Below, in pieces: positions 25,466 through 58,900 of a stretch of DNA of 64,000 nt. Within the stretch, counting starts at the first letter, position 1; every line of letters begins with the position of its first letter. The notes under the pieces were generated by a model, which ran no database searches, had not been told where the DNA came from, and worked only from the letters and a program-made list of their open reading frames with translations. The translations under genes and the position numbers were made by a program. The DNA is from Bugula neritina. Taxonomy: Eukaryota > Animalia > Bryozoa. The DNA is taken from contig OZ037773.1 of the NCBI GenBank assembly GCA_964035545.1, positions 10,383,751 through 10,447,750 of the forward strand. The letters are read 5' to 3'.

Positions 25466-31680
<6,215 letters not shown>

Positions 31681-31879
31681 CCTTGACCTTGCAGTGCCTC
31701 TTTGTTGTTAGCCTCAGTTACTTAGCCTTCATGTACTTAGTTGCGGCAGGAACTTTCTATTTCAGGAGTTGTCTTGCCTAATATTCCGATAACATTCCTC
31801 GACACATTCATCTGAACAAGCGTTATTCTGCACTGCTATGTGTATATTTATCATGATGTCGTATCTACAGTATTATATA

Positions 31880-32035
31880 TATATGATATTATATGTATAT
31901 ATCACGTCATATACCACATTATATGATATTATATGTATATATCACGTCATATACCACATTATATGATATTATATGTATATATCACGTCATATACCACATT
32001 ATATGATATTATATGTATATATCACGTCATATACG
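31880..32035. repeat. 40-bp tandem repeat in the PLEKHD1 3' region
   Basis: ATATGATATTATATGTATATATCACGTCATATACCACATT, about 4 copies. Confidence 0.85.
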
Positions 32036-32524
32036 ATATTGTATGATGTTATATTTACCATTTCCTGTGTATATGGAATACCATCCTGTTATAATCAGAT
32101 ATTTTCATCTGTATTGATGTATGCAAGTCTTACATATTATATTCTGCTCTTCACTCTTCATATCATTTTCTGTCCTACGTCTATACTTCATCATGCCACA
32201 TTATTTTATATATTATTTATATTATATTATTTATATTTTATATTATATCGTTATGTTATACATATTTACTGTTTTTTTTTTTGTTGTCAGAAATTAACAT
32301 GGTAATATTTAGAAAAAAGCGACTAAATTGCAGCGTTTTTCTTCCAAATCTGTATGCAATATTTTAAGTCTAATGCATATATTTAAGTGTTTTGGTAAAT
32401 TTTGTCTGGTTTTGTTACTCGGTCACCTTAGTCCTGGATTTACTTTCTCATTTTATGTCTTCTATTTATTTTATTGTGGAATAAAATAGTTTCTTGCTTG
32501 AAACAGCTACTACCATATATTAGT

Positions 32525-32720
32525 ATATTATCATATAGTACTAGATAGAGATAGTATTATATGCACACACTCTGTATATATTATCATATAGTACTAGCTA
32601 GAGATAGTATTATATGCACACACTCTGTATATATTATCATATAGTACTAGCTAGAGATAGTATTACATGCACACACTGTATATATTATCATATAGTGCTA
32701 GTTAGAGATAGTATTATATG
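32525..32720. repeat. ~53-bp tandem repeat
   Basis: ATATTATCATATAGTACTAGCTAGAGATAGTATTATATGCACACACTCTGTAT, ~3.7 copies. Confidence 0.85.
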
Positions 32721-34087
32721 ACTGCTAATATTAGGTGTTGTACTCAATCATTCATTTATAATGCATGTACAGGTATATTGACAATTATGCATATAACAAA
32801 TTTGTAATGCAAATTTTCAATGGTAGATATTGATTAATAAATACTGACCTACAGCTTTGATTAACGTTGAAAACTAGCAGGTTCAACAAATAATTAAAAA
32901 ATGATTTTGTGGAATATTTTGCCTAGAAGTCAACGATTTTTGTCAATATTTAGGTATCTAATTGAACATGAGTGACATGAATGTAGTTAACTGCATTAAC
33001 CAATAAGACATGCATTGATATAAGCTTCTAGTACATCTCTTAGCCGACACGAACTGATAGTCTTATCAACATACACAGAATCTATAGATTAGATTATTTT
33101 GATAGACTTTTCAGAGTAATGAACTTCTTGAAAAATTTGTTTCATAGATTAATTTTAAAAAAATTATACACAGTATTTAAACATCAGCAATAAAATTTAC
33201 AAAGAATACTTTATTTTTTACAATCAAATTATAAATCATAATTAATCACTAATAGCTTCATCATAAAATTGAAACAATAAATACAAAATCATAAAAGGAA
33301 GCCCTATAATTTTCTTAAATAAATTCAATTGTGTACAGCATACAATAGGAGTAATTTACAGTGGCCAACATAGCTGACTGTCTGCTAGCTATATAATATA
33401 CACAAACTAGTAGCGTGATACTAGGTGCTCTGATTTAGCAGACCCGTGCACTGCAGGTATATTAAATTAAAGCAATGTGATGTGTCAACCCTATATAGTG
33501 TTAATAATTCTTTACTGCAGCATATAATTCTCTAGTTAACTATTTTAAGTTTCTTCCTCGCTTAGGTTTAGGGATTTGCTCAGTCCCTGTTGGATAGCAG
33601 CATCTCATGATTCATACAATTGATACTACGCATAAGCATGGCTCTCTGTGGTGTTCTGGTTGTAGATTGGTAGGAGTTCACTTTCCTGATGAACAGTGTT
33701 GTGGCTTATGCAGTCGTTGTACCAGAAACTTTTCCAGTTGAATTTCAGGACAAATTTGACTCGCTGGAAACTTGTCAGCCCAATTCTTGTTTCAGCTTCT
33801 ATAAAAGTTAATTAATATTGTGTAGTATTTTATACTCAGTTCATGACTTACTCTGGTGTGTAGATTTGCATAACAAAAATCAATATTTGAATCCTGTAGA
33901 TTTCTTTGGTCAACCACAATGCTTAAAAATAACTCTGAAAATATTCATACTCATAATTCTTTAATTAATTAGAGAACACGGAACTAATACTTTCCAGCAT
34001 TCAGCCCAAATATTTCGCAGGTAAATTTCTGTTTTGTATATTCAGTTTCAACTTTGAAGAAACAATAGTTATGAAATTAGCTTACCC

Positions 34088-37000
34088 TTATAATGGAGTA
34101 GAGCTCTGTGTACCAGATGCCGCCTGCAGGTCTTCAAGCATCTCTCTGGTTTTTACAACCTGGAGATGATCACTGTCATAAATAGCCTGAAACATTTGTA
34201 GAGCTGATGTTAAATTATCTTTTGCTTCTCCGTGTTTGTTGATCACCTTGTATGTGATACCAATGTTTCTGTACACCAGCGCTATGTTCGGATGGTTAGC
34301 ATCGTTACCATATACAGCCTTCATCATTTCCAAAGATTGTTGAAAATATTTCAAAGCCTGATCTTGCTTTCCTTGTTTAAAAAAAATACTTCCAATGTTT
34401 GCGTAGCTGGTTGCAATGTTGTCATGATTGGGTTGCATCTTGTAAACTACTTTCAGTATACCTAAGCATTTTATGTGTGAATTTAAAGCTTTTTTGTAGT
34501 TTCTCTGGCTTTCATACATATCCGCTAGCTTTTGATGAATAGCCGCAATGTCAGAATGGTTGGTGTCTAACCCATGTAGCTTCTTTTGCATTTCCAGTGC
34601 CAAATTGAGGTACTCTATAGCTTTTTCCTGTTCTTTCGAAACATTGTGAATGTCGGCCAAGGATCCATAACAGTTTGCAATGTCACAGTGGTTGGCATTT
34701 TCACCGTATGTACGTTTGAAAATCTTTAGTGCTTTTTCATACTCCTTTATTACAGAAGGGAAATTGCCCTTTGTACAATAGAGCTCAGCAATTACCTGAT
34801 GTGACCTTCCAATGTCCACATGATTCGTATGTTTGCCATGAACACGTTCAATCATGTTGTGTGACAATGTGCAATACTTTTCAGCATCCTTGGTCCTGCC
34901 CATGTCGCTGCACGCTCGTGTCATATCTCGGTAGCATATCGCAATGTCCCTGTGATCAGCATTCTCTCCATGCAGTTCCTTTAGAATCCTCAGACAATTT
35001 TCATAATGTTCCAGTGCTTTGTTAAAATTTGCAAGTAGTTGGTGCACATTTCCAATATTAGTTTGATTTGTAGCCAATTGAGGGCAATTTTTGTCTTCAA
35101 GTTTGTTCAGTATTTCAAATTCTTTGCTGTAGCTTTCCAAAGCATCATCAAATTTTCTTATTGCACACTCCAAGTCCCCAATTTGCCTGTAGGTTTCACC
35201 AGTATCTTTATGATCTGGAAAGTTCTGCAACAAACCTAAAGAGTATTCGTAGTACTCTAAAGCACATTCATAATTGCCATTAATTTTGTGTGCCTCACCA
35301 CAATCTCTATGTGCAGCTGCAAGTTGTAAATTATGACTACCTTCTCGGTAAATTTCCTTAAATGTAGTCAATGATCGGTTGCAGTGTTTTAGAGCTTCAA
35401 TGCTGTCTCCCAATTTTATGTAAGCCTTGCCGACATTGTTGTGGGCAGTCGCTATTTCAAGATTGTTAGCATCATCTCCAAAACATGTTTTTAGAGCTTC
35501 CAAGGCAATCATACTATTTTCTAAAGATTTTTGATACTCAGCTCTTTTGAAGTAAAATACTCCAAAGTGAGAGTAGACACTCGCACTATCAACATTGCAA
35601 TTAGAGTTTTTATAGAAATGGTTCAGCATGTCTAATGATTTGTTCAAATGCTCTAACACCTGCTCGTCAGATCCATCTTCCATAAGTGTGTAACTAATTT
35701 TTAAGTGAATAAGAGCAAGATCTCGATGACCAGTTTTTTTTTTGTAAATAGGCTTCAATATTTTAAGACAAGATTTGAAGCATTGCCGCGCAGCTTTAAA
35801 CTCTTTCTGCTTTAAATAGGCTATTCCTATTTTTTCAGATATTGTTGCTGTTTGCCTATTTCCATATTTTCCAAAAATTTGTTCCATAATTTGCAGTGCT
35901 TTCTCGTAATATCGAACTGCTTCTGAAAAGTTTCCGTTTTCCAGATGAACATCTCCTACCGAGCTGTAGCCTATAGCTACAGTAGGCTGCAGAGAAGTAT
36001 TTTCACCTGCAGCAAATCTAAGCAAATTTAATTCGTCAACCTCAATTTCAAATTTTTCAGGCAGCTTTCCAACAGCTTCTGAACTAATAGACTTGATAAT
36101 ATCTCGTGTATCATCATAACTAAATTCTAATATTTGTAGTGATTCAACGATTAATTGAAATGCCAGTGTAAAATTTCCTACTTCTGAATATACTTGTGCT
36201 GCTGATCGTAAAATTTCAGCCAAAAGAAGCAAAACTTTGTGGGGTGTGTCAGTTTTTTCTAATAGAAGGTATGCATCATCAAAATACTTCAGAGCTTTGT
36301 CCCATTGCTTTAGCTTCTGATAGACTCTGCCTAGAAGGTGAAGGCTATGAGCTAGTCGTGGGTCAGCGGAGGATTTTCTGAGAGCAATACTTCGAATAAT
36401 TTTGGCTTTTGCCAAGACTTGCAGACTTTTATCAAACTGTTCTTTGTGTAAATATATGAGTCCTTCTTCTTCTAGACTCTGAGCAAACTCTAGACTTGAA
36501 TGTGTTTCACCATTATACAGCTTCTTTAGGATATCTTGCGAGAGCTTGCAGTATTTCAAAGACTCTTCATAGTTCCACAGATTGCATAGAATTTTAGCCA
36601 TGTTTCTATAGCACCTGGATAAGTCAAGGCTACTTGAGCTCTCACCATATCGATGTCGCAGCTTTTGAAGACATACTTGTTGATGCTGTAATGCTTCTTC
36701 AAAGTTTTCTTGCTCAAGTTGCACAGCAGCCATTGTTTCACAATAAAAAACTTCTATGTCATAATTATCTTCTATTGACAAATGCATTGGTTCAATCAAT
36801 TTCAATGAACACCTGACGAATGCTTCGGACTGATCAAAAAACTTTAGGTGGCGGCAAGTAGTGGCTAATGCTTTGTACGCGTGTGAAGCAGTTTCTAGCA
36901 TTTGTTTACCAGCATCATCGGTTGGTGACATGCTTTTGAAAAATTTATCTAAATTGTTGTTCAAAGGAAAACTTGTTTTACCACTTATTTTATGACTTAG

Positions 37001-39478
37001 TATTTTAAAGACTTCTTCGAGCACCTGTAGAGATTGCCTGTAGCAAAATATTGTATTCAAACTGTCTGCAGATAGAATCTTCCACTTGAGACTTTCTTCA
37101 ACTGTTGCACTATTTTTATCCAACCATTCCAAGTAATTGAGAGCTGTTTCATGCAATCCATTTGACAGCAGCAAATAGCAACAGATCTCTGCACATTTCT
37201 TATCATGTGCAGAATTGGCAAGCAGCGGAGCTTGCGCGTTTTTGGCCGTTAAAAGTGATGTACATCCATTCTCTAAAACACCTGACCCCAATGCGTTTCT
37301 AATTCTCTTTAGGGCGGAAAAATGATCACCAGTAAAGAATATTACTTCCGTTTTTATCCAAATATTATTAACACTTTCATTTCGAATATATCCGATTGAT
37401 TCTTGCAGATGGATTGCTAAATTGCGGCTAAGAAAAAATGTTAATTTGTAGCCAAGTTTTCTTGCATTTAAGGCTCTTCTTGCAAAATTTTGAATCAAAT
37501 TTTTCATTGGGACAAGAATGCAGCCAAGAGCAATAAACAAGTTTGGAGGTATGTGATATCGATCAGTGCTTTTGGAATTGAAACATTTGTACAGTGATAC
37601 AAGATCGTACTTCGAGTTTGAGTGCAGATAAGTGCAGAGCCGAGTGTATATTGACAAAGCTAGCAGAAAGTGAATAAGGGAACAGTTCCTCATCGACAGC
37701 AAACCAATTTTAACCAAGTCCTCATACTTTTCCCAGGGATATTTAGATGATAGATTAAATAAATGACCAATATCTGTAGCTATAATTGTTGGGAATCGAA
37801 AAATATCTGTTTTGACTTTAATATCAAAGTTTTCGGGTGGTCCAAAAGTTGTGAACGTTGGCTTAAAACTGTATTTCTCCATATCACTAAAAAGAGTATA
37901 CAGTCGCTTCTCAATAATTCGCGAGCAATTAATGCCGTTTTCAACTTCAAACTCAAGTTGAGCTGTTTGAAATTTGTTTAGTAGGTGATTACCACCTGGG
38001 CTGGCATATATCTCAATGGTTGAGAAGAGCAAGTCGGACACGTCGCCCACTTGCTCTGCAGGGTCTGCCATGGCTTCCTTCTTGTAAAGCTCCATCAACT
38101 CATCTACTGTTAAGATATAGCTTTTACCTCCAGGCTTACCAGTAGGAATATTTCCAGCCGGCTCACTTATTCCATCAAATCTAAAGCCCACTCTTATGCT
38201 CCTCAGCAAGGATTGCATTTCTTTAGAATCTAGTTCTGGTTCCTGTATGTCATATGATTTGAGAGGGGTCTCTCCGCAGTTCCCTAGTCTGAAGTACGTG
38301 TCCATGGCAAGATCTTTAAAGTACTGGAGCTCCTCATCTGATTCAACAATAAAAATATATTCTAAATCAGAATAGGGAGTTGCCTCACCTCTAGCGATTG
38401 AGCCTAGCCCAACGACTGCAAAAGAACAAGGCGGCTCTCTCCCTTGTCTCTTTAAAATGCTGATACTAGAGGTGATGATTTTATTAGCAATAATCACAAG
38501 ATTATCACTGCTAACTTTAGTTAGCTCAAAAACTTTTTTCGTAAACGTTGAAGAGATGTCATTTTCCTTGTTATCAAAGAAGTCATCAATGTTGACTTTT
38601 TGCTCCAATTCTTTCAAACTCTGCAACTCATTTACTGTCTCACTCCGAAACTTTCCTAGCAATTCTTTGTGGTCTTTGGTGAGCTGCTGAAACTCTTTAA
38701 ATGTTAATGGATGAGAATTTTTATACCAGCTTTTTTCTATGTCGTAAATCTTTTCTTCTTTGCCTAGTTCTACTTTATGTTGGCTAACTGTAAGGCTGGC
38801 ATTTGCTAGTCCATGAGCCTAAAGTATTTATAAAAACTATTCAGCATGCACCTAACATCTAACTAAAAGTTTGTAAACACTTAAGAGTAGCCATGTTTAA
38901 GATTATTGTCATTTAGTGCATTCATTGTCAAACTCTAACTTATATTTCACTAGTAGATTTCATGTTTCCACATTGGTAATATAATATTTCCAAGATGTGA
39001 TAAGACTTACTTTAAGATAAAGTGACCAGTCATTGCCAACTTTATCTGCCTTTGAGTGATATCTCTTTGTCAGCTGGTCTAGTAATAAAATTTGTTCCTC
39101 TTTTGTTTCTATTAACAATATAAAAGTAGATAATTTCCTATAGAAATCATTCTTCTATAACCTTTGTTACAATACCAAGTTTTAAATTTCATGCAATATA
39201 ACAAATATTCACATGGTGCATAAGATATTTGTATCAGTTGTACCAGAGTTTATTCTAATTATAATTGTTTTTAATTATCATAAATTTTAGCCTGACAGTT
39301 CTCCAAATATGTCGCATGCAGTCAGGTCTTGATATTTACAGTTGGTAGCCTACCTAACAACTACTACATACAGCAGAGGTTAGAGTGCTACATTATGGCA
39401 AGTATTCCATTAGATGCCTAACTTTCTTTAAAATTGTACTTTTGTTAATATATACTTACTTTCCACTCTACTATCCAT
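34088..39478 (-). CDS. Nucleotidyltransferase (GlnD/GlnE/DUF294-like, pol-beta superfamily) - TPR-repeat protein, ~1,615 aa
   Basis: Exons 39478-39460 (MDSRVE), 39108-39011 (..GNDWSLYLK) and a 4.7-kb exon 38818-34088 containing ORF 34088..38662. NTase signature FAVVGLGSIARGEATPYSDLEY (hGS-x10-DhE) with a downstream acidic RFDG strand, a helical segment (DIKVKTDIFRFP) and ~20 TPRs of ~42-44 aa (e.g. HPNIALVYRNIGITY, ALKYFQQSLEM). Confidence 0.88.
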
Positions 39479-41669
39479 ACTTATTAAAGCTGACTCAGTT
39501 TTTCATTTTATTCCAATTTATCTCAGTTTCCGCTGTAGATCTCAGTTTTAGTCAAACTTGCAAGTCTTTTCTATCTCTTCCTCTACAAAGAAAGAAGTGG
39601 AGTTATAGCTGTGATGATCAGTTCACGTTCCTACACAGCAATAACTTTTCTATATACTGTTGGTAGCATGCAGGTATATCAAGCAGACAAATAAACACAA
39701 AGAATGTTTTAATATTGTTTTGTTCGTAATATGACTATGCTATTGTTATAACTATAATGCTTAATATTGATTATCCAGCATATACCTCAATGCTTTTTAT
39801 CCATGTTTGACAGTGTGGTTTGAGTAAATATAAAAGGGGGCTTTACCTGAAAGTAAGGGGATTCCCCTGCATATATCATAATAATATGACTGATAAACTC
39901 AGTCTATTGGTACAAGTACATAGTCCAAACAGCTAAGAGATATGAATTATTGAAGAGGTATGATTTTAACCTACGTGTGGCCAACAGTGATAATTTCATT
40001 GAAATGATGCAATATGGTACTAGAAAGCAGAAGTTTCATTATTTCTACCTGTATTTGAAAGTTTAGTAAAGTTGGCCAACAAAACCTGTGGCTAAACTGT
40101 TATGAAGCATGCAGTACAAGTTGAACAGTATTATCAAGGAATGAATAGCTATGGCCTTCTACCATCAAACCAATATTCTGGTTTTATAATAAACATCAAC
40201 TGAGACGTAGTAAAGATGCATTAAAGTTAATGTGATGTTTAGGTTTGCTTAGCTAAATTTTATGTATATGAGTGAGTTAACGGGGTGTTTGCATCATTTA
40301 ATCTAGATGGGAATATTGGAAGTTTTTAAATGTGTTTTAAAAGCTACCGCAATCCACGAAAATAAATTTATAGAAAATAATTGTATTTATATCTACCATT
40401 AATTGTATCTTTATAATTGCCATTTGTAATTTCACTCTCATAATCTATCATCCAATTGAAGCCATATGATTAAGTTTCAGTGTAATACTTAATTTTACTG
40501 AGTTATAACAACAGAATTGCTTTATAATACCTATAATACAGCTCACAGAGAAGTCATGTTTTGCATTCCCTATGAAAGTTTTATTCTAAAGCAATATAAT
40601 GAATAACTTTGGACATCCTTTTACTTACTACCAGCTTCCCAGCTGTACGTATGTTATTAGACATTTTATTAGATATATATATATAGAATCACTTGTATAA
40701 CAGCTACTAGTTTATAGGCAATTGCTGCATGCATATAATATGGTACACTGATATGTAATATATATAGCATCAAAAACTTACCTTCAATCTATTCGCAGTT
40801 GATGGAGAGATCATTGAGGACTAGATATCAAGTACTGAGTCTCATATACTGAACTCAACCTGCCAGGAGTGACAGAATATTTTGTATATTGACTATATAG
40901 CTATTGTAAAGTATGTGCAGTGCTTTGGAAGTTGTTATCAAATGCCGCATGACAGAAGATGTACTTCACTTATCAGCTTTACAGTTTGACTATCAACAGC
41001 GGCTTTGTTTGAATGGAGGTACTATGTGCACTCAGTGAACACTGTGTATATAGTGCAATGTGTATTATATAGTACAATGTGTATAATGAAAAGTGTGTAT
41101 ATTGAATAGTGTAGGAGGAAATAACTTCAAATTATCCTTTGATTTATAATTTCAACAAACTGCCCACTCAGCTTACCAAGCAGCATGCAAGTCTATATAT
41201 TAGCTGGCCAAGTGTGTTTAGTTACCAATTTAATATAATTATATTCAAATAAAAATTACCACATGTTTATCACTATAATTATACATAAAATATAAAAACA
41301 CAAAATGTAAAAACACATATAAGTTATGTATAGAAAAATACAATATATATACATATATAATGCAAGTATAAAATTCATCACATTGTTACTCAGAGATTAA
41401 ATGTCATAAAAGAGATTTTTTTGGTGTAAAAAATATATAAAATAAAGTATATAAATTTATCAAATAATATTTTTATTTATTATAGCTGCATAAATCTCCT
41501 TTTAATCCAGTATAATTTTGTATTAAGTAAAACGTTTACCTATGAACCAATAGTGAGTATTGTATTTGATATAGAGATATTTTACTAAACAGATAACAAA
41601 ATATAAGTTAAATTACTTTTTTTATTTTAAAAAAGTAATCTAATTTATAAATTCAGAAAACCTTTGCAC

Positions 41670-46257: not shown

Positions 46258-48786
46258 ATGGACTATATAACTTACGGCAGCGAGGAGAACGGCAACCAGT
46301 CCAGAGGTGTAATTGTTTATGAGGACAAGTCCAACATGAGTAAAGCAGCCGGGCGCATGGAGTACATGAGTAAGCACAGATCACCTTTACTTCCTGTACA
46401 GGAGAAACTAGCTAAGGTGAGGCAACTCTAACTGCAGCTAGGACGGCTGCTGTGAGTGTTATTATATGTTGTCTGATTAGCAGTAAAAACTACAGTGTGA
46501 AGATACTTTAGCTAAATCCATATGAATTCTACAGAGAAACTTAATTTGTGGTAGGAGTAATCATCTCATGATGCAGATTTATTATGTTTTTATTAAAACT
46601 AATCAACAAAGTGTTGTTTGGTTGGTTGCTAGGTGACAGAAGAGCATAGTAGGGGTGTGATGTTGAGTGCTCCAGACAGTACGATGATCCTCACCAACAT
46701 GCTCAAGTTCAGCGGGGCTAAGAAGTGTATCGACGTGGGTAAGACAAACCTTGCTCATGTCACAGAGTATATGTATTACCACATGCACACACCTGCACAC
46801 ACCTGCATACACCTGCGCACACCTGAATACACCTGAACACACTTGCACACACCGGGCCTTCGCACACTTGAAATGAGACTTTATATAAGCGGTGTGAAAT
46901 TTGAATATTCCTAATTTCAAGTTAAATTGCAAGTTTTCATTACACGGAACTTCTTGAAATTTCACTGGAATAAAAGATAATTACTTTTTTAAATTACTAC
47001 ATTACTTGAGCAGCTGTGACAAATTGCTTGCTCTTGTAAAGTTAAATAGAAAACTAACTTTATGTTCTACTGATCACTACTACTAAATGTAAAGCTTGTG
47101 TTATCTGTTAAGTTCCAGGTAATCCCTAGTAGCCTACTGATATTTTATAATATTATACTAACAGACACTGATAGTACTAATATCCTATATAATATGAGAG
47201 AAATACCATATCTAGGATGATGTATTACCGCTGGTTTCCTGTTCCAGGGGTGTTCACGGGGTACAGCGCCCTCTCCTGGGCTCTGAGCATACCCGAGGAC
47301 GGGAAGGTTGTTGCACTCGATGTGTCCGAGGAAGACGCATCTATCGGGAAGCCATTTTGGAAAGAGGCGGGTGTTGAACATAAGATAGATCTGAGAATAG
47401 CTCCGGCTAACAAATCCCTTCGTAAGTTTCTGCGTATTCCAATTTGCACTTCTTTATTTTATTCTCTTGGAGTTATGCTCTCTCACTATATTTACTCTCA
47501 CTCTGTTGGAGTTATACTCCCTTACTACCTATGTTACTTTGTACACACAATGCAACAAAACTCTTATAAAAGGCTATTGAGAAATAAAGCAAGATTGTTA
47601 AATCTGAAAAGCTGATGCAATATCACTAGAAGTTGTCCTCTTTTGTCTTACAGAAGAGATGCTAGACTCGGGAGAGGGTGGGTCCTATGACTTCATGTAT
47701 ATTGATGCTGACAAGGAAGGCTATGATACGTACTATGAACTCGGACTAAAACTCTTACGAGCAGGCGGAATCATTGCAATTGACAATGTAAGCTAAGCAG
47801 TGTAACTATCTAAAGTATCACAACTGTAATGTGTCACACTGTATTGTAATGTGTCACACTGTATGTAATGTGTCACACTGTATTGTAATGTGTCACACTG
47901 TATTGTAATACGTCGCACTGTAGGTAATGTGTCACACTGAATTGTAATGTGTCACACTGTATGTAATGTGTCACACTGTATGTAATGTGTCACACTGTAC
48001 TGTAATGTGTCACACTGTATGTAATGTGTCACACTGTATGTAATGTGTCACACTGTATGTAATGTGTCACACTGTATGTAATGTGTCACACTGTATGTAA
48101 TGTGTCACACTGTATTGTAATGTGACACACTGTATTGTAAGACGTCGCAATAACTCCAATGTGTCACATGATCATGTCTGATTGATAAACTAAAAACTAA
48201 ATAGTTTGCATTTATTATTATATGCAGGAAAAGCTATTTATGTTTCGGAATAATATAATTTACTATCACCATAAAATGAGTCATATATAACAGGATGTAG
48301 ACTTGTTGGAAGAAACCTATTAGCTATGTTTGCAGTAGTTTACAATACTTTTAGTTTTATAAACTCTATAATTTGCTCTAATTTGTCACAAAAATTAAAC
48401 TGGGTGAAATGAATTTTAATTTGTATCACGGTCATGGTAAGTTTGCTCTTCAAAAAGATAAACTCGAAATTTAGATTACAGGAGAACTTGAACTTTATTA
48501 GGTATGAATACTGAGGGTTAACTGTTTATACTAAATGAAACTGAAAATGGTGAACTAACATAGAATGACTCCCTGGCAAGGCCCAAACATGCAGGATTCA
48601 CATTTTTACTAATTAAAACAATTTAATTTGCAGACCTGGTTTTTCGGCACCTTAGTGGATACAAGTATTAAAGATGCAGGGGTACAAGTACTTCGTGCAC
48701 TGAACGAGAAAATTAGAGAAGATGTGAGAGTAACAGCTGTCATGGTGAATGCAGGAGATGGCATTTTTCTGTGTCTTAAAAACTGA
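46258..48786 (+). CDS. SAM-dependent O-methyltransferase, COMTD1/caffeoyl-CoA OMT-like (Methyltransf_3)
   Basis: Exons 46258-46416, 46633-46738, 47248-47421, 47654-47787, 48634-48786. Motifs AKKCIDVGVFTGYSAL, WKEAGVEHKIDLRIAPA, SYDFMYIDADKEGYDTYYE..LLRAGGIIAIDN, GDGIFLC. Confidence 0.93.
47824..48128. repeat. 19-20-bp intronic minisatellite (TGTAATGTGTCACACTGTA)n
   Basis: About 15 copies. Confidence 0.9.
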
Positions 48787-55972: not shown

Positions 55973-58900
55973 ATGATGACCTCCACAAGAATTGAAACAG
56001 ACAGTTTCGGAGAGATTGCCGTACCAAACTGCAAGCTGTTTGGCGCCAACACAGCCAGGTCTCTCACTAACTTCAAGATTGGTGACCATCGAGATCTCAT
56101 GCCAGTGAGTTGGTCTCCTTTGTCACGTTTAGTACTAGTAGCTCTTCTCAGCTGCTTGCTTTGTGTGTTGGTATTTGCTACCTTCTACTCTATAGCTGTA
56201 CTGGTAGCTTACCATTGCTTGCTAAATGTTTATCTGTGTATCAGCAATAAGTATGTACTGCACCAGACTGAAGTTGTGTTTGTTGCTATAGCAACTGTTA
56301 CCATGACTACTTATTAACAGATTGAAGTTGTGAGATGCTTAGCACTACTCAAGAGGGCATCTGCAGAAGTCAACAGAGAGTTTGGTCTGAGGGAAGACAT
56401 TGCAGATCTGATTGTTCAGGCGTCTCAGGAGGTGAGTGCAGGTAACTTGCTCACCTGTGTACTACTCACTTATGTACTACTCACCTGTACACTACTCACC
56501 TGTATACTACTCACCTGTATACTACTCACCTGTACACTACTCACCTGTATACTACTCACCTGTATACTACACACCTGTATACACTACTCACCTGGCTGCA
56601 GGTGTTTGAGGGGAGGTTAGACGAGCACTTCCCTCTAGTCATCTGGCAGACTGGCTCAGGAACTCAGACTAATATGAATGTAAACGAAGTGATCAGTAAC
56701 CGTGCCATACAGCTGGCTGGGGGTGAGCTAGGTTCTAAGGCTCCAGTACATCCTAATGACCACGTGAACATGAGTCAGGTAGGGCTTTTCATCACCCACC
56801 CTGTACGTGTTTACCTTGGCCTATGATCTCTACATCTGCATACAGTATATACATCTGTATACAGTGTGTACAGTGTGTTGTAGAGCTCTAATGATACATT
56901 CCCCACAGCAATGCATCTTGCGGTTGCCATGGAAACACATAAACACCTACTGCCTGCCTTGACTAAGCTGAAGTTAGCCTTAGAGAGTAAGGTGAAGGAG
57001 TTTGAGGGCATTATAAAGATCGGCCGCACACACATGCAGGTCTGAGTGTATGTTTCTCGGTCTATTTATTCTGTACACAGAGTATATATATGTACTGTTC
57101 TGTTGGTTATATGAATATGTTTAGTCTGTGTACCTATCAGTATTCTTACAATATGCGGTGCTGTGTAGGATGCCACCCCCTTGTCACTCAGTCAAGAGTT
57201 TAGTGGTTATGTACAGCAGGTTACCAACTCTATAGAGAGAGTAAAGTCAGCCCTTCCCAGAGTGCACCAGCTGGCAGCAGGTCATCATATGTATATACTA
57301 TATATATTATTATATGTATATACTATCTATATTATCATATGTATATACTATCTATATTATCATATGTATATACTATATATATTATCATATGTATATACTA
57401 TCTATATTATCATATGTATATACTATATATATTATCATATGTATATACTATATATATTATCATATGTATATACTATCTATATTATCATACGTATACATTT
57501 TGTTTCCAGGAGGCACTGCAGTTGGCACTGGACTCAACACTAGACTGGGGTTTGCTGAGAAAGTAGCCTCTAAACTCTCAGAACTTACGGGTGGGTATAT
57601 GCACACTCGTACTCTATCAGAACTTGTGGTCTCATTGTTCAAATTTAATCTGTTTCCTTCCGTAATCAGCAACTATCTTTAGTTATCTGTAATTGTAAAT
57701 TTTACGATAAATACTATCTAAAACTTTAGGTCATGATTACAGGGTTACCGTTGGTTACTGTTGTTACAGGGTTACCGTCGGTTACTGTTGTTACAGGGTT
57801 ACCGTTGGTTACGTCACCAAACAAGTTTGAGTCTCTCGCCACTAACGACGCTCTGGTGGAGTTTCACGGCTCCTTGAATGTGACAGCAGTTAGTCTGATG
57901 AAGATAGGTGAGTGCTCACTCTACATCTCTCTGCTCACTCTACATCTCTCTGCTCACTCTACATCTCTCTGCTCACTCTACATCTCTCTGCTCACTCTAC
58001 ATCTCTCTGCTCACTCTACATCTCTCTGCTCACTCTACATCTCTCTGCTCACTCTACATCTCTCTGCTCACTCTACATCTCTCTGCTCACTCTACATCTC
58101 TCTGCTCACTCTACATCTCTCTGCTCACTCTACATCTCTCTGCTCACTCTACATCTCTCTGCTCACTCTACATCTCTCTGCTCACTCTACATCTCTCTGC
58201 TCACTCTACATCTCTCTGCTCACTCTACATCTCTCTGCTCACTCTACATCTCTCTGCTCACTCTACATCTCTCTGCTCACTCTACATCTCTCTGCTCACT
58301 CTACATCTCTCTGCTCACTCTACATCTCTCTGCTCACTCTACATCTCTCTGCTCACTCTACATCTCTCTGCTCACTCTACATCTCTCTGCTCACTCTACA
58401 TCTCTCTGCTCACTCTACATCTCTCTGCTCACTCTACATCTCTCTGCTCACTCTACATCTCTCTGCTCACTCTACATCTCTCTGCTCACTCTACATCTCT
58501 CTGCTCACTCTAGTCTGGAGGTACAAACCTGAGTGAATCATATGTGATGTCATTCACACCGTTTCTAGTTCTACTATTGCAGGAAATGACATCAGATTGC
58601 TAGCCTCAGGCCCACGGTGTGGTATTGGGGAACTGATTCTACCAGAGAATGAGCCGGGGAGTAGCATAATGCCCGGTAGGTACTCAGTTAGCTGGTAGGT
58701 GCTCAGTCTACACAGCTGAGGCACGGTTACAGCTCCACTATATGAGCGCGTGTGTCGTAGTGCCTGTATTAGGCTGTCCATTATTTTACTATTTCAAGGT
58801 ATTTTGTCTGCTAGTTATGTGTGTATTACTTGTGTTCAAATTGTCTTAATGACTTGAGTGTAATGCATAAGTTTATATATTGTTATATACTGTGTTACCA

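Follow-up and report, generated by a model that had tools for sequence, protein, structure and literature searches.

The gene described here lies on the minus strand of a 64,000-nucleotide stretch of DNA (the window: C9:10383751-10447750 of a 216-Mb assembly, with positions counted from its first letter) and comes from a cheilostome bryozoan of the Bugula neritina complex; it is both functional and transcribed, transcription having been seen in a sibling lineage. The N-terminal ~435 residues of the encoded protein are, by their predicted fold, a pol-beta nucleotidyltransferase (NTase) of the GlnE/DrrA type with a complete catalytic set, and they are followed by a helical region and an array of tetratricopeptide repeats (TPRs). 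As far as sequence comparison can tell, this family and a set of multidomain, effector-like proteins from obligate intracellular bacteria carry NTase modules of one and the same subfamily, and it was most probably from such bacteria that the family passed into animals, on more than one occasion. With somewhat more confidence than doubt, we read the protein as a TPR-controlled protein nucleoside monophosphate (NMP) transferase of a conflict- or immune-like family that is built on a module with bacterial kin, its activity and role being putative.

The nucleotidyltransferase module

The protein features, with residues numbered in the full protein, are the following.

37448..38752, minus strand: DrrA/GlnE-fold nucleotidyltransferase module (residues ~62-496), predicted to comprise the pol-beta catalytic core and a helical DUF294_C-like substrate/nucleotide-binding domain
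38360..38404, minus strand: catalytic motif G178-S179-X10-D190-L-E192 (G-X11-[DE]-X-[DE]), aligned to DrrA GSLAKAQATEYSDLD
38171..38182, minus strand: RFDG strand with the third acidic residue, D254 (sequence match)
36734..37447, minus strand: middle helical-repeat region (residues ~497-734), conserved only among bryozoan members
34166..36733, minus strand: ~20 KLC/NPHP3-type TPRs (residues ~735-1590), from Pfam and a repeat map

The initial annotation, made from the sequence alone, had placed the protein in the GlnD/GlnE/DUF294 branch of the pol-beta superfamily on account of an intact catalytic motif and a later acidic RFDG strand. Both elements are present, the motif GSIARGEATPYSDLE at 38404-38360 and the strand at 38182-38171, and the placement is upheld by Pfam, by the profile search and by the fold. 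A motif of the G-X11-D-x-[DE] type, here G178-X11-D190-x-E192, defines GlnE and DrrA (PMC8097203). Of the two Pfam families anticipated for residues 1-450, DUF294 (PF03445) scores 29.9 bits with the open reading frame (ORF) and 30.6 bits with the N-terminal part, above the gathering cut-off of 21, while the second, DUF294_C, is taken up below; SidM_N (PF20879) lies just under its cut-off (21.4 vs 27 bits).

Modelling of the N-terminal region, which had been proposed as a further check, yielded a confident NTase fold with DrrA and GlnE as its top matches. The AlphaFold2 model rests on an alignment of 47 NTase modules (from the window, genome paralogues and bryozoan, tunicate, amphioxus and metagenomic homologues), covers the first 560 residues of the translation of window:37106-38785:- (residues 51-610 of the full protein) and reached a predicted local distance difference test (pLDDT) score of 87.6 and a predicted template modelling (pTM) score of 0.89. 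When it was compared with the PDB by Foldseek, DrrA ranked first (E 1.9e-8), followed by both adenylyltransferase domains (N- and C-terminal) of GlnE from E. coli and then by aminoglycoside nucleotidyltransferases. Pairwise superposition by VIA-align gave a Z of 26.1 for DrrA (6yx5_B; 323/339 residues, 16% identity) and of 20.7 and 20.3 for the N- and C-terminal domains of GlnE (1v4a and 3k7d, respectively), with unrelated chains at 9 or less. A single-sequence search of the PDB found DrrA only marginally (E 0.027), so that it took the profile and the fold to reach significance: built from 38 modules, the profile matched DrrA with E 2.1e-7 in two stretches, the G-S...D-x-D/E strand and the VK..I.R helix. 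The neighbours in the ESM Atlas are DUF294+DUF294_C proteins.

Eleven residues (G178, S179, S189, D190, E192, E222, D254, P264, K375, R380 and R432) are invariant in 85/85 sequences of the subfamily, 18 of which are bacterial and 26 of which are paralogues in this genome.

The middle region and the TPR array

The helices of the model past residue 446 resemble TPR-like proteins (Z ~8). A BLAST search with residues 500-740 found homology in bryozoan members and none outside them, and we therefore make no claim that the whole architecture was transferred together. Further downstream, Pfam reports TPR_12 in 12 stretches (E 4e-86), together with TPR_10 and TPR_NPHP3, and a hidden Markov model (HMM) trained on the repeats themselves maps 17-18 TPR units at a spacing of 42-44 residues between residues 735 and 1590. 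Since the gaps in this map fit 2-3 degenerate units, the array comprises ~20 TPRs in total, in agreement with the number given by the initial annotation. Neither a P-loop NTPase family (NACHT/NB-ARC) nor an F-box or OTU domain was matched by Pfam in the window protein.

Gene structure and transcription

The gene has three coding exons on the minus strand (39478-39460, 39108-39011 and 38818-34088), which join to a stop-free translation of 1615 residues (4845 coding nt plus the stop codon), and exon 3 alone holds 4728 of the 4845 coding nt (97.6%). The start codon, the end, the motifs and the exon share that the initial annotation had given are all borne out by the RNA joints and the translation.

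39460..39588, minus strand: exon 1, 5' untranslated region and start of the coding sequence; RNA contig coverage 39460-39588, divergence beyond
39109..39459, minus strand: intron 1, 351 nt, GT..AG; joint 39460 to ~39108 in both RNA-seq runs
39011..39108, minus strand: exon 2, 98 nt, K-TKEEQILLLDQLTKRYHSKADKVGNDWSLYLK; RNA contigs 39010-39105
38819..39010, minus strand: intron 2, 192 nt, GT..AG, phase 0; joint in X1 and X2 (CT..AC on the plus strand)
34088..38818, minus strand: exon 3, 4728 nt of coding sequence and the stop codon at 34090-34088; starts with AHGLAN

The transcript evidence consists of contigs of two RNA-seq runs of one sample, labelled symbiont metagenome, which were placed on 33800-39700 and carry neither depth nor strand information. 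These contigs are spliced and ~93.5% identical to the window, and therefore come from a sibling lineage. Their joints run from 39460 to ~39108 and from 39011 to 38818, and each of the two introns is of the GT..AG type on the gene strand; the three letters that lie between the two sides of the first joint are exon-2 bases that differ in the sibling. A single RNA contig of 4713 nt spans 34107-38818 of exon 3. Taken by itself, the open frame of this exon (34088..38662, minus strand) has 1524 residues from an internal TTG and stays open further upstream, its 5' extension ending at the acceptor 38819/38818. An acceptor at 38788/38787 had also been considered, and the RNA joints place the true start of exon 3 at 38818.

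The coding part of exon 1 is 19 nt long (39478-39460, MDSRVE+1), with the ATG at 39478-39476, an in-frame TGA upstream of it at 39505-39503 and the donor A|GTAAGT at 39460/39459. Its upstream boundary is approximate, near 39582-39588. By eye, no N-terminal signal sequence was seen, and the protein is read as cytosolic. The transcribed 5' leader also contains a three-codon upstream ORF (ATG AAA AAC TGA, 39506-39495, minus strand), 28 nt ahead of the main ATG.

Paralogues in the genome

A six-frame search of the genome with the NTase module returned 65 matches, nearly all in stop-free frames of 860-2267 residues, and the Pfam DUF294 model alone gave 57 listed matches, all above the cut-off. The paralogues form tandem clusters on C2, C5, C6 and C7 with a few broken copies, and the family in this genome is, by sequence, one of at least 60 mostly intact members that arose by tandem duplication. 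In 6/6 paralogues tested, which were drawn from different clusters, the NTase is followed by TPRs, and eight complete genes on C6 range from 1478 to 2267 residues, the length difference being one of TPR number.

The initial annotation had taken the single large exon as fitting horizontal acquisition or retroposition. A bacterial link of the family is supported by the trees described below, but the exon cannot serve as a sign of recent transfer or retroposition, as the paralogues share the structure: in every paralogue examined the coding sequence lies in one long open frame, and in the eight C6 genes the big exon opens with AHGL(A/V)N, as does exon 3 in the window. The one-large-exon structure is therefore older than the duplications.

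The window copy is a diverged singleton at its locus, and no other sequence exceeds 45% identity to its NTase module. A Bugula neritina protein is nearly identical to one of the paralogues, and a JGI metagenome contig represents a 91%-identical genomic counterpart of the whole locus; these two matches place the genome in the B. neritina species complex. Some copies on C5 carry in-frame stops or are split (G000:C5:15101536-15102501, C5:15116246-15117531 and C5:11775798-11777066), so that the clusters hold some pseudogenes, as is expected under birth-and-death evolution.

Relatives in animals and bacteria

Word-based protein searches found the same architecture in Watersipora and Bugula at 35-42% identity, as well as matches in Ciona, Styela, Clavelina and Branchiostoma at 24-28%; Hydra vulgaris also carries a member. 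A search seeded with an amphioxus sequence gave at least 763 proteins at E <=0.001, of which the best 120 listed come nearly without exception from Branchiostoma, including several species and hybrids, and on this count amphioxus holds hundreds of family members. In an exhaustive profile search of 1.84 billion cluster representatives, 3019 matches had E <=1e-3 and 1457 had E <=1e-30; the ~1,450 family clusters overall are clusters at 50% identity. The animal members bear automatic database names such as 'Protein-PII uridylyltransferase N-terminal domain-containing protein', KLC1 or TTC28. Four chains from Branchiostoma and others (P0041, P0160, P0046 and P0262; 1560-4007 residues) contain two or three NTase modules and could be either true tandem-module proteins or fused gene models.

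On the bacterial side, a scan for the motif [AIV]TPYSD[LF]E[YFH] in one genome per species identified 22 loci, nearly all in obligate intracellular or endosymbiotic bacteria (Rhabdochlamydiaceae, other Chlamydiae, Ca. Megaera, Rickettsia, Holosporaceae and Amoebophilaceae). The motif also occurs in two metagenome-assembled genomes (MAGs), one of Bacteroidota and one gammaproteobacterial, the latter with at least 8 copies. These bacterial relatives have 900-2700 residues and combine the module and TPR_12 arrays variously with NB-ARC, AAA ATPase, RickCE deubiquitinase or methyltransferase domains, and a 3700-residue F-box protein of Ca. Jidaibacter contains two modules. In the relatives P0035, P0039 and L021, the same NTase module is fused to NB-ARC or NACHT NTPases. 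A profile derived from the animal sequences scores the intracellular-bacterial relatives at 1e-43 to 1e-86, in contrast to ~1e-15 for canonical standalone DUF294 proteins. DUF294-TPR architectures in intracellular bacteria and a few marine invertebrates, which the initial annotation had mentioned, are hence real, both in these searches and in the published NEX2 family of Neochlamydia, an F-box-(OTU)-DUF294-TPR family with 50 members (Domman et al. 2014, PMC4209131).

The copies of the gammaproteobacterial MAG (L017, L021, L022, L025, L029, L030 and L032 on OZ257147.1; L024 on OZ257148.1) are mostly located on a replicon of 0.70 Mb, are 1200-2100 residues long and parallel the animal expansions. 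Two of these proteins were scanned against Pfam, one of which has NB-ARC and one an AAA ATPase domain.

Phylogeny and transfer

In a tree of 87 rows (LG+C20 PMSF, quick search), all sequences from bryozoans make up a single clade on a long stem (SH-aLRT 100), the chordate sequences group with those of intracellular bacteria (SH-aLRT 94), two chlamydial sequences branch off deepest, and the canonical DUF294 proteins are set apart by a long branch of their own. With Hydra in the data set, its module falls within a Rickettsiales-dominated clade that also holds Amoebophilaceae and Bacteroidota (SH-aLRT 100), and it is 48% identical to a Ca. Megaera protein. Approximately unbiased (AU) tests, which were run on LG+G4 trees of 39 and 47 rows, reject animal monophyly if Hydra is included (p 6e-7). 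The nesting of Hydra and the rejected monophyly therefore support at least one transfer between bacteria and animals that is separate from the others, and the Hydra copy is a candidate for a separate, fairly recent transfer from a bacterium to a cnidarian. A bacterial origin of the module is favoured because the wider DUF294/GlnD/GlnE superfamily is bacterial, the bacterial branches are basal and the animal distribution is patchy. The two Hydra proteins, P0179/P0295 (XP_065671463 / XP_065671461), are annotated as 'MRCK alpha-like'.

Selection

Between the window and the genomic copy of the sibling, dS is 0.18 and the ratio of nonsynonymous to synonymous substitution rates (omega) is 0.23 overall. 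By region, omega amounts to 0.22 for the NTase, 0.15 for the linker and 0.24 for the TPRs, and it peaks locally at 0.71 on exon-3 codons 801-900. Among the C6 paralogues, omega is 0.14-0.46 in the NTase vs 0.44-0.59 in the TPR array. Selection is hence purifying overall, and the TPRs are roughly twice as relaxed as the enzyme. The TPRs of the C6 paralogues often show the lower dS, a pattern suggestive of gene conversion.

In the sibling genomic contig L013:1634-6337, a 5-nt deletion at exon-3 nt 1244 splits the ORF into calls of 364 and 1134 residues, while the sibling RNA contigs lack the deletion. It represents either an assembly error or a polymorphism (a segregating null allele).

Proposed function and alternatives

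The characterised relatives modify tyrosines with AMP or UMP: DrrA acts on Rab1, GlnE on glutamine synthetase and GlnD on PII. By analogy, the window enzyme would transfer AMP or another NMP from a nucleoside triphosphate to a hydroxyl side chain of a target protein, and the TPR solenoid would gate the enzyme, either by selecting the target or by sensing a ligand. The family would consist of single-chain sensor-effector proteins with a conflict or immune-like role, which we propose because of the tandem expansion, the turnover of repeat number, the looser evolution of the TPRs and the fusions of the module to NB-ARC or NACHT in relatives. These four conflict-type features point to such a role without proving it. 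A more far-reaching version would hold that animals possess a third, as yet unrecognised class of AMPylases with the DrrA/GlnE fold, which bryozoans, chordates and Hydra each acquired on their own from intracellular-bacterial effectors and which expanded into arrays of single-chain innate-immune or allorecognition sensors, in which fast-changing TPRs detect a pathogen or non-self ligand and unleash AMPylation of a host or pathogen protein. We regard this version as possible, and put it forward only tentatively.

Several points weigh against the reading as a TPR-controlled NMP transferase of bacterial kin. DUF294_C (PF10335), the second Pfam family that the initial annotation had anticipated, has no match in the window protein, even at E 10; it is scored by Pfam in the relatives P0030 and P0033, and the model spans the DUF294_C region in the alignments to DrrA and GlnE, with template modelling (TM) scores of ~0.52 by query against the DUF294+DUF294_C models of the Atlas. 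Whether the substrate is a protein, a small molecule or an RNA end is deduced from only three characterised relatives, and NMP transfer and binding by the TPRs are putative. The transcripts come from the sibling lineage, in runs labelled symbiont metagenome. Omega is below 1 in every region, with no direct signal of positive selection, and its higher value in the TPRs could be due to relaxed constraint, repeat misalignment or gene conversion; a singleton that is kept in the sibling species also fits a fixed cellular function. With regard to the transfers, an AU test that constrained bryozoans and chordates together and left Hydra out did not reject animal monophyly (p 0.26), and we therefore make no claim that the two groups acquired the module separately. 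As the root lies on the long outgroup branch, the direction and the number of bryozoan transfers are a matter of inference, and the tree tool warns of long-branch joins.

The main rival explanation is that the family members are constitutive cellular regulators that AMPylate endogenous targets such as small GTPases or chaperones, with the TPRs as fixed adaptors and the expansion serving tissue- or cargo-specific regulation. DrrA AMPylates Rab1 and FICD AMPylates BiP. TPRs of the KLC type are classic adaptors for cargo, the catalytic residues show strict conservation, and the window copy is an isolated singleton (at most 45% identity to paralogues) with an omega of 0.23 towards the sibling orthologue and of 0.15 in the linker. 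The initial annotation had itself named a conserved single-copy housekeeping orthologue as its counter-hypothesis, and the locus is indeed a singleton under purifying selection, but one that belongs to at least 60 paralogues. This extreme, lineage-specific copy number in tandem arrays, with hundreds of members in amphioxus, speaks against constitutive regulators, as do the differing TPR numbers of near-identical paralogues, the fusion of relatives to NB-ARC or NACHT and the patchy distribution in animals; all of these features are more typical of conflict-type families than of core regulators. All in all, we consider this explanation unlikely.

Two other explanations concern the enzyme itself. 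The initial annotation had offered second-messenger synthesis beside protein AMPylation, and a synthase of cyclic or linear nucleotides like cGAS, OAS or the CD-NTases, triggered by a ligand of the TPRs, would come from the same pol-beta superfamily, in which sensor-coupled NTases are common in immunity. The predicted fold suits the AMPylating alternative and lends this one no support: no cGAS, OAS or CD-NTase chain is found among the 50 best Foldseek matches listed or the 50 VIA-align entries, no Pfam family of these types is reported for the window protein, the Pfam, ESM Atlas and PDB profile searches all lead to DUF294, SidM or GlnD, and DrrA and GlnE can be aligned over the full length of the module, their helical C-terminal domain included. 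A nucleotide synthase is thus improbable. The protein might also be a pseudoenzyme or scaffold whose NTase fold is kept for binding of a nucleotide or partner, or the gene might be drifting towards a pseudogene, to which the split ORF in L013 and the few paralogues with stops could be attributed; yet the metal- and phosphate-binding residues are invariant (85/85), omega in the NTase is ~0.2, the sibling RNA contigs are free of the deletion and the ORF in the window is intact over 1615 codons. We give this possibility hardly any weight.

Comparison with known systems

The best structural match, DrrA/SidM of Legionella pneumophila (PDB 6yx5, 3nku), shares the G-X11-D-x-[DE] motif and the VK..I.R helix with the window protein and is, like many bacterial relatives of the family, an effector of an intracellular bacterium. 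In DrrA, the enzyme domain is followed by a Rab guanine nucleotide exchange factor and a domain that binds phosphatidylinositol 4-phosphate, whereas the window protein continues into TPRs; the former is secreted and acts on host Rab1, the latter is encoded by an animal gene with spliceosomal introns. GlnE, GlnD and DUF294 proteins have the same fold of catalytic and helical domain as that predicted for the window module, but canonical DUF294 proteins pair it with CBS, cNMP-binding or Cache sensors instead of TPRs. NEX2 and the proteins of Rickettsiales, Holosporaceae and Amoebophilaceae share the order of DUF294 and TPR_12, the invariant residues, the subfamily and the expansion into gene families. 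The bacterial NEX2-like proteins differ by additions that target eukaryotes (F-box, OTU, RickCE deubiquitinase or methyltransferase), which the window protein lacks, and by the absence of introns.

With receptors of the STAND/NLR type from invertebrates and bacteria (NB-ARC-TPR, NACHT-TPR), the family shares the logic of an effector followed by a repeat sensor, the lineage-specific tandem expansions and the variable repeats. Since the window protein, unlike these receptors, has no P-loop NTPase switch, any activation would have to occur directly instead of through oligomerisation. With FICD/HYPE and SelO, the family would share protein AMPylation in animal cells, its predicted chemistry. They are, however, unrelated in fold (Fic and pseudokinase, respectively), single-copy and conserved, whereas the window family is of the pol-beta type, large, patchy and expanded.

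According to a review of 2021, Fic enzymes and SelO are the only AMPylases known in metazoans (PMC8097203). If the window family has AMPylase activity, it adds the pol-beta (DrrA/GlnE) class to them. The domain family and the DrrA/GlnE fold are already known, as is the DUF294-TPR architecture in bacteria, and a search of the accessible literature found no publication on the animal family. The kinship with effector-like bacterial proteins, together with a Hydra copy that lies within Rickettsiales, makes the family a clear case in which to study the transfer of effector enzymes to animals and their domestication there, and the NTase-TPR architecture provides a sensor-enzyme hypothesis that can be tested directly.

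Genomic surroundings

The neighbours of this one-big-exon gene in the window are ordinary intron-split genes, represented by a catechol-O-methyltransferase-like exon (47217-47612, plus strand; PF01596, E 7.6e-20) and a Lyase_1 piece of the fumarase/argininosuccinate-lyase type (57733-58533, plus strand; E 4.9e-7). The intron-dense surroundings that the initial annotation had described were looked at by a spot check only, in which these two pieces, with their short exons, agree with the description.

Just downstream of the gene lies a block of minisatellites and simple repeats (28389-32720), which contains 29 units of 35 bp (28940-29952), 13 units of 26 bp (30123-30463), a (CT)n tract of ~326 bp (31099-31424) and units of 40 and 53 bp at 31880-32720. 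The ORFs on both of its strands are probably repeat artefacts.

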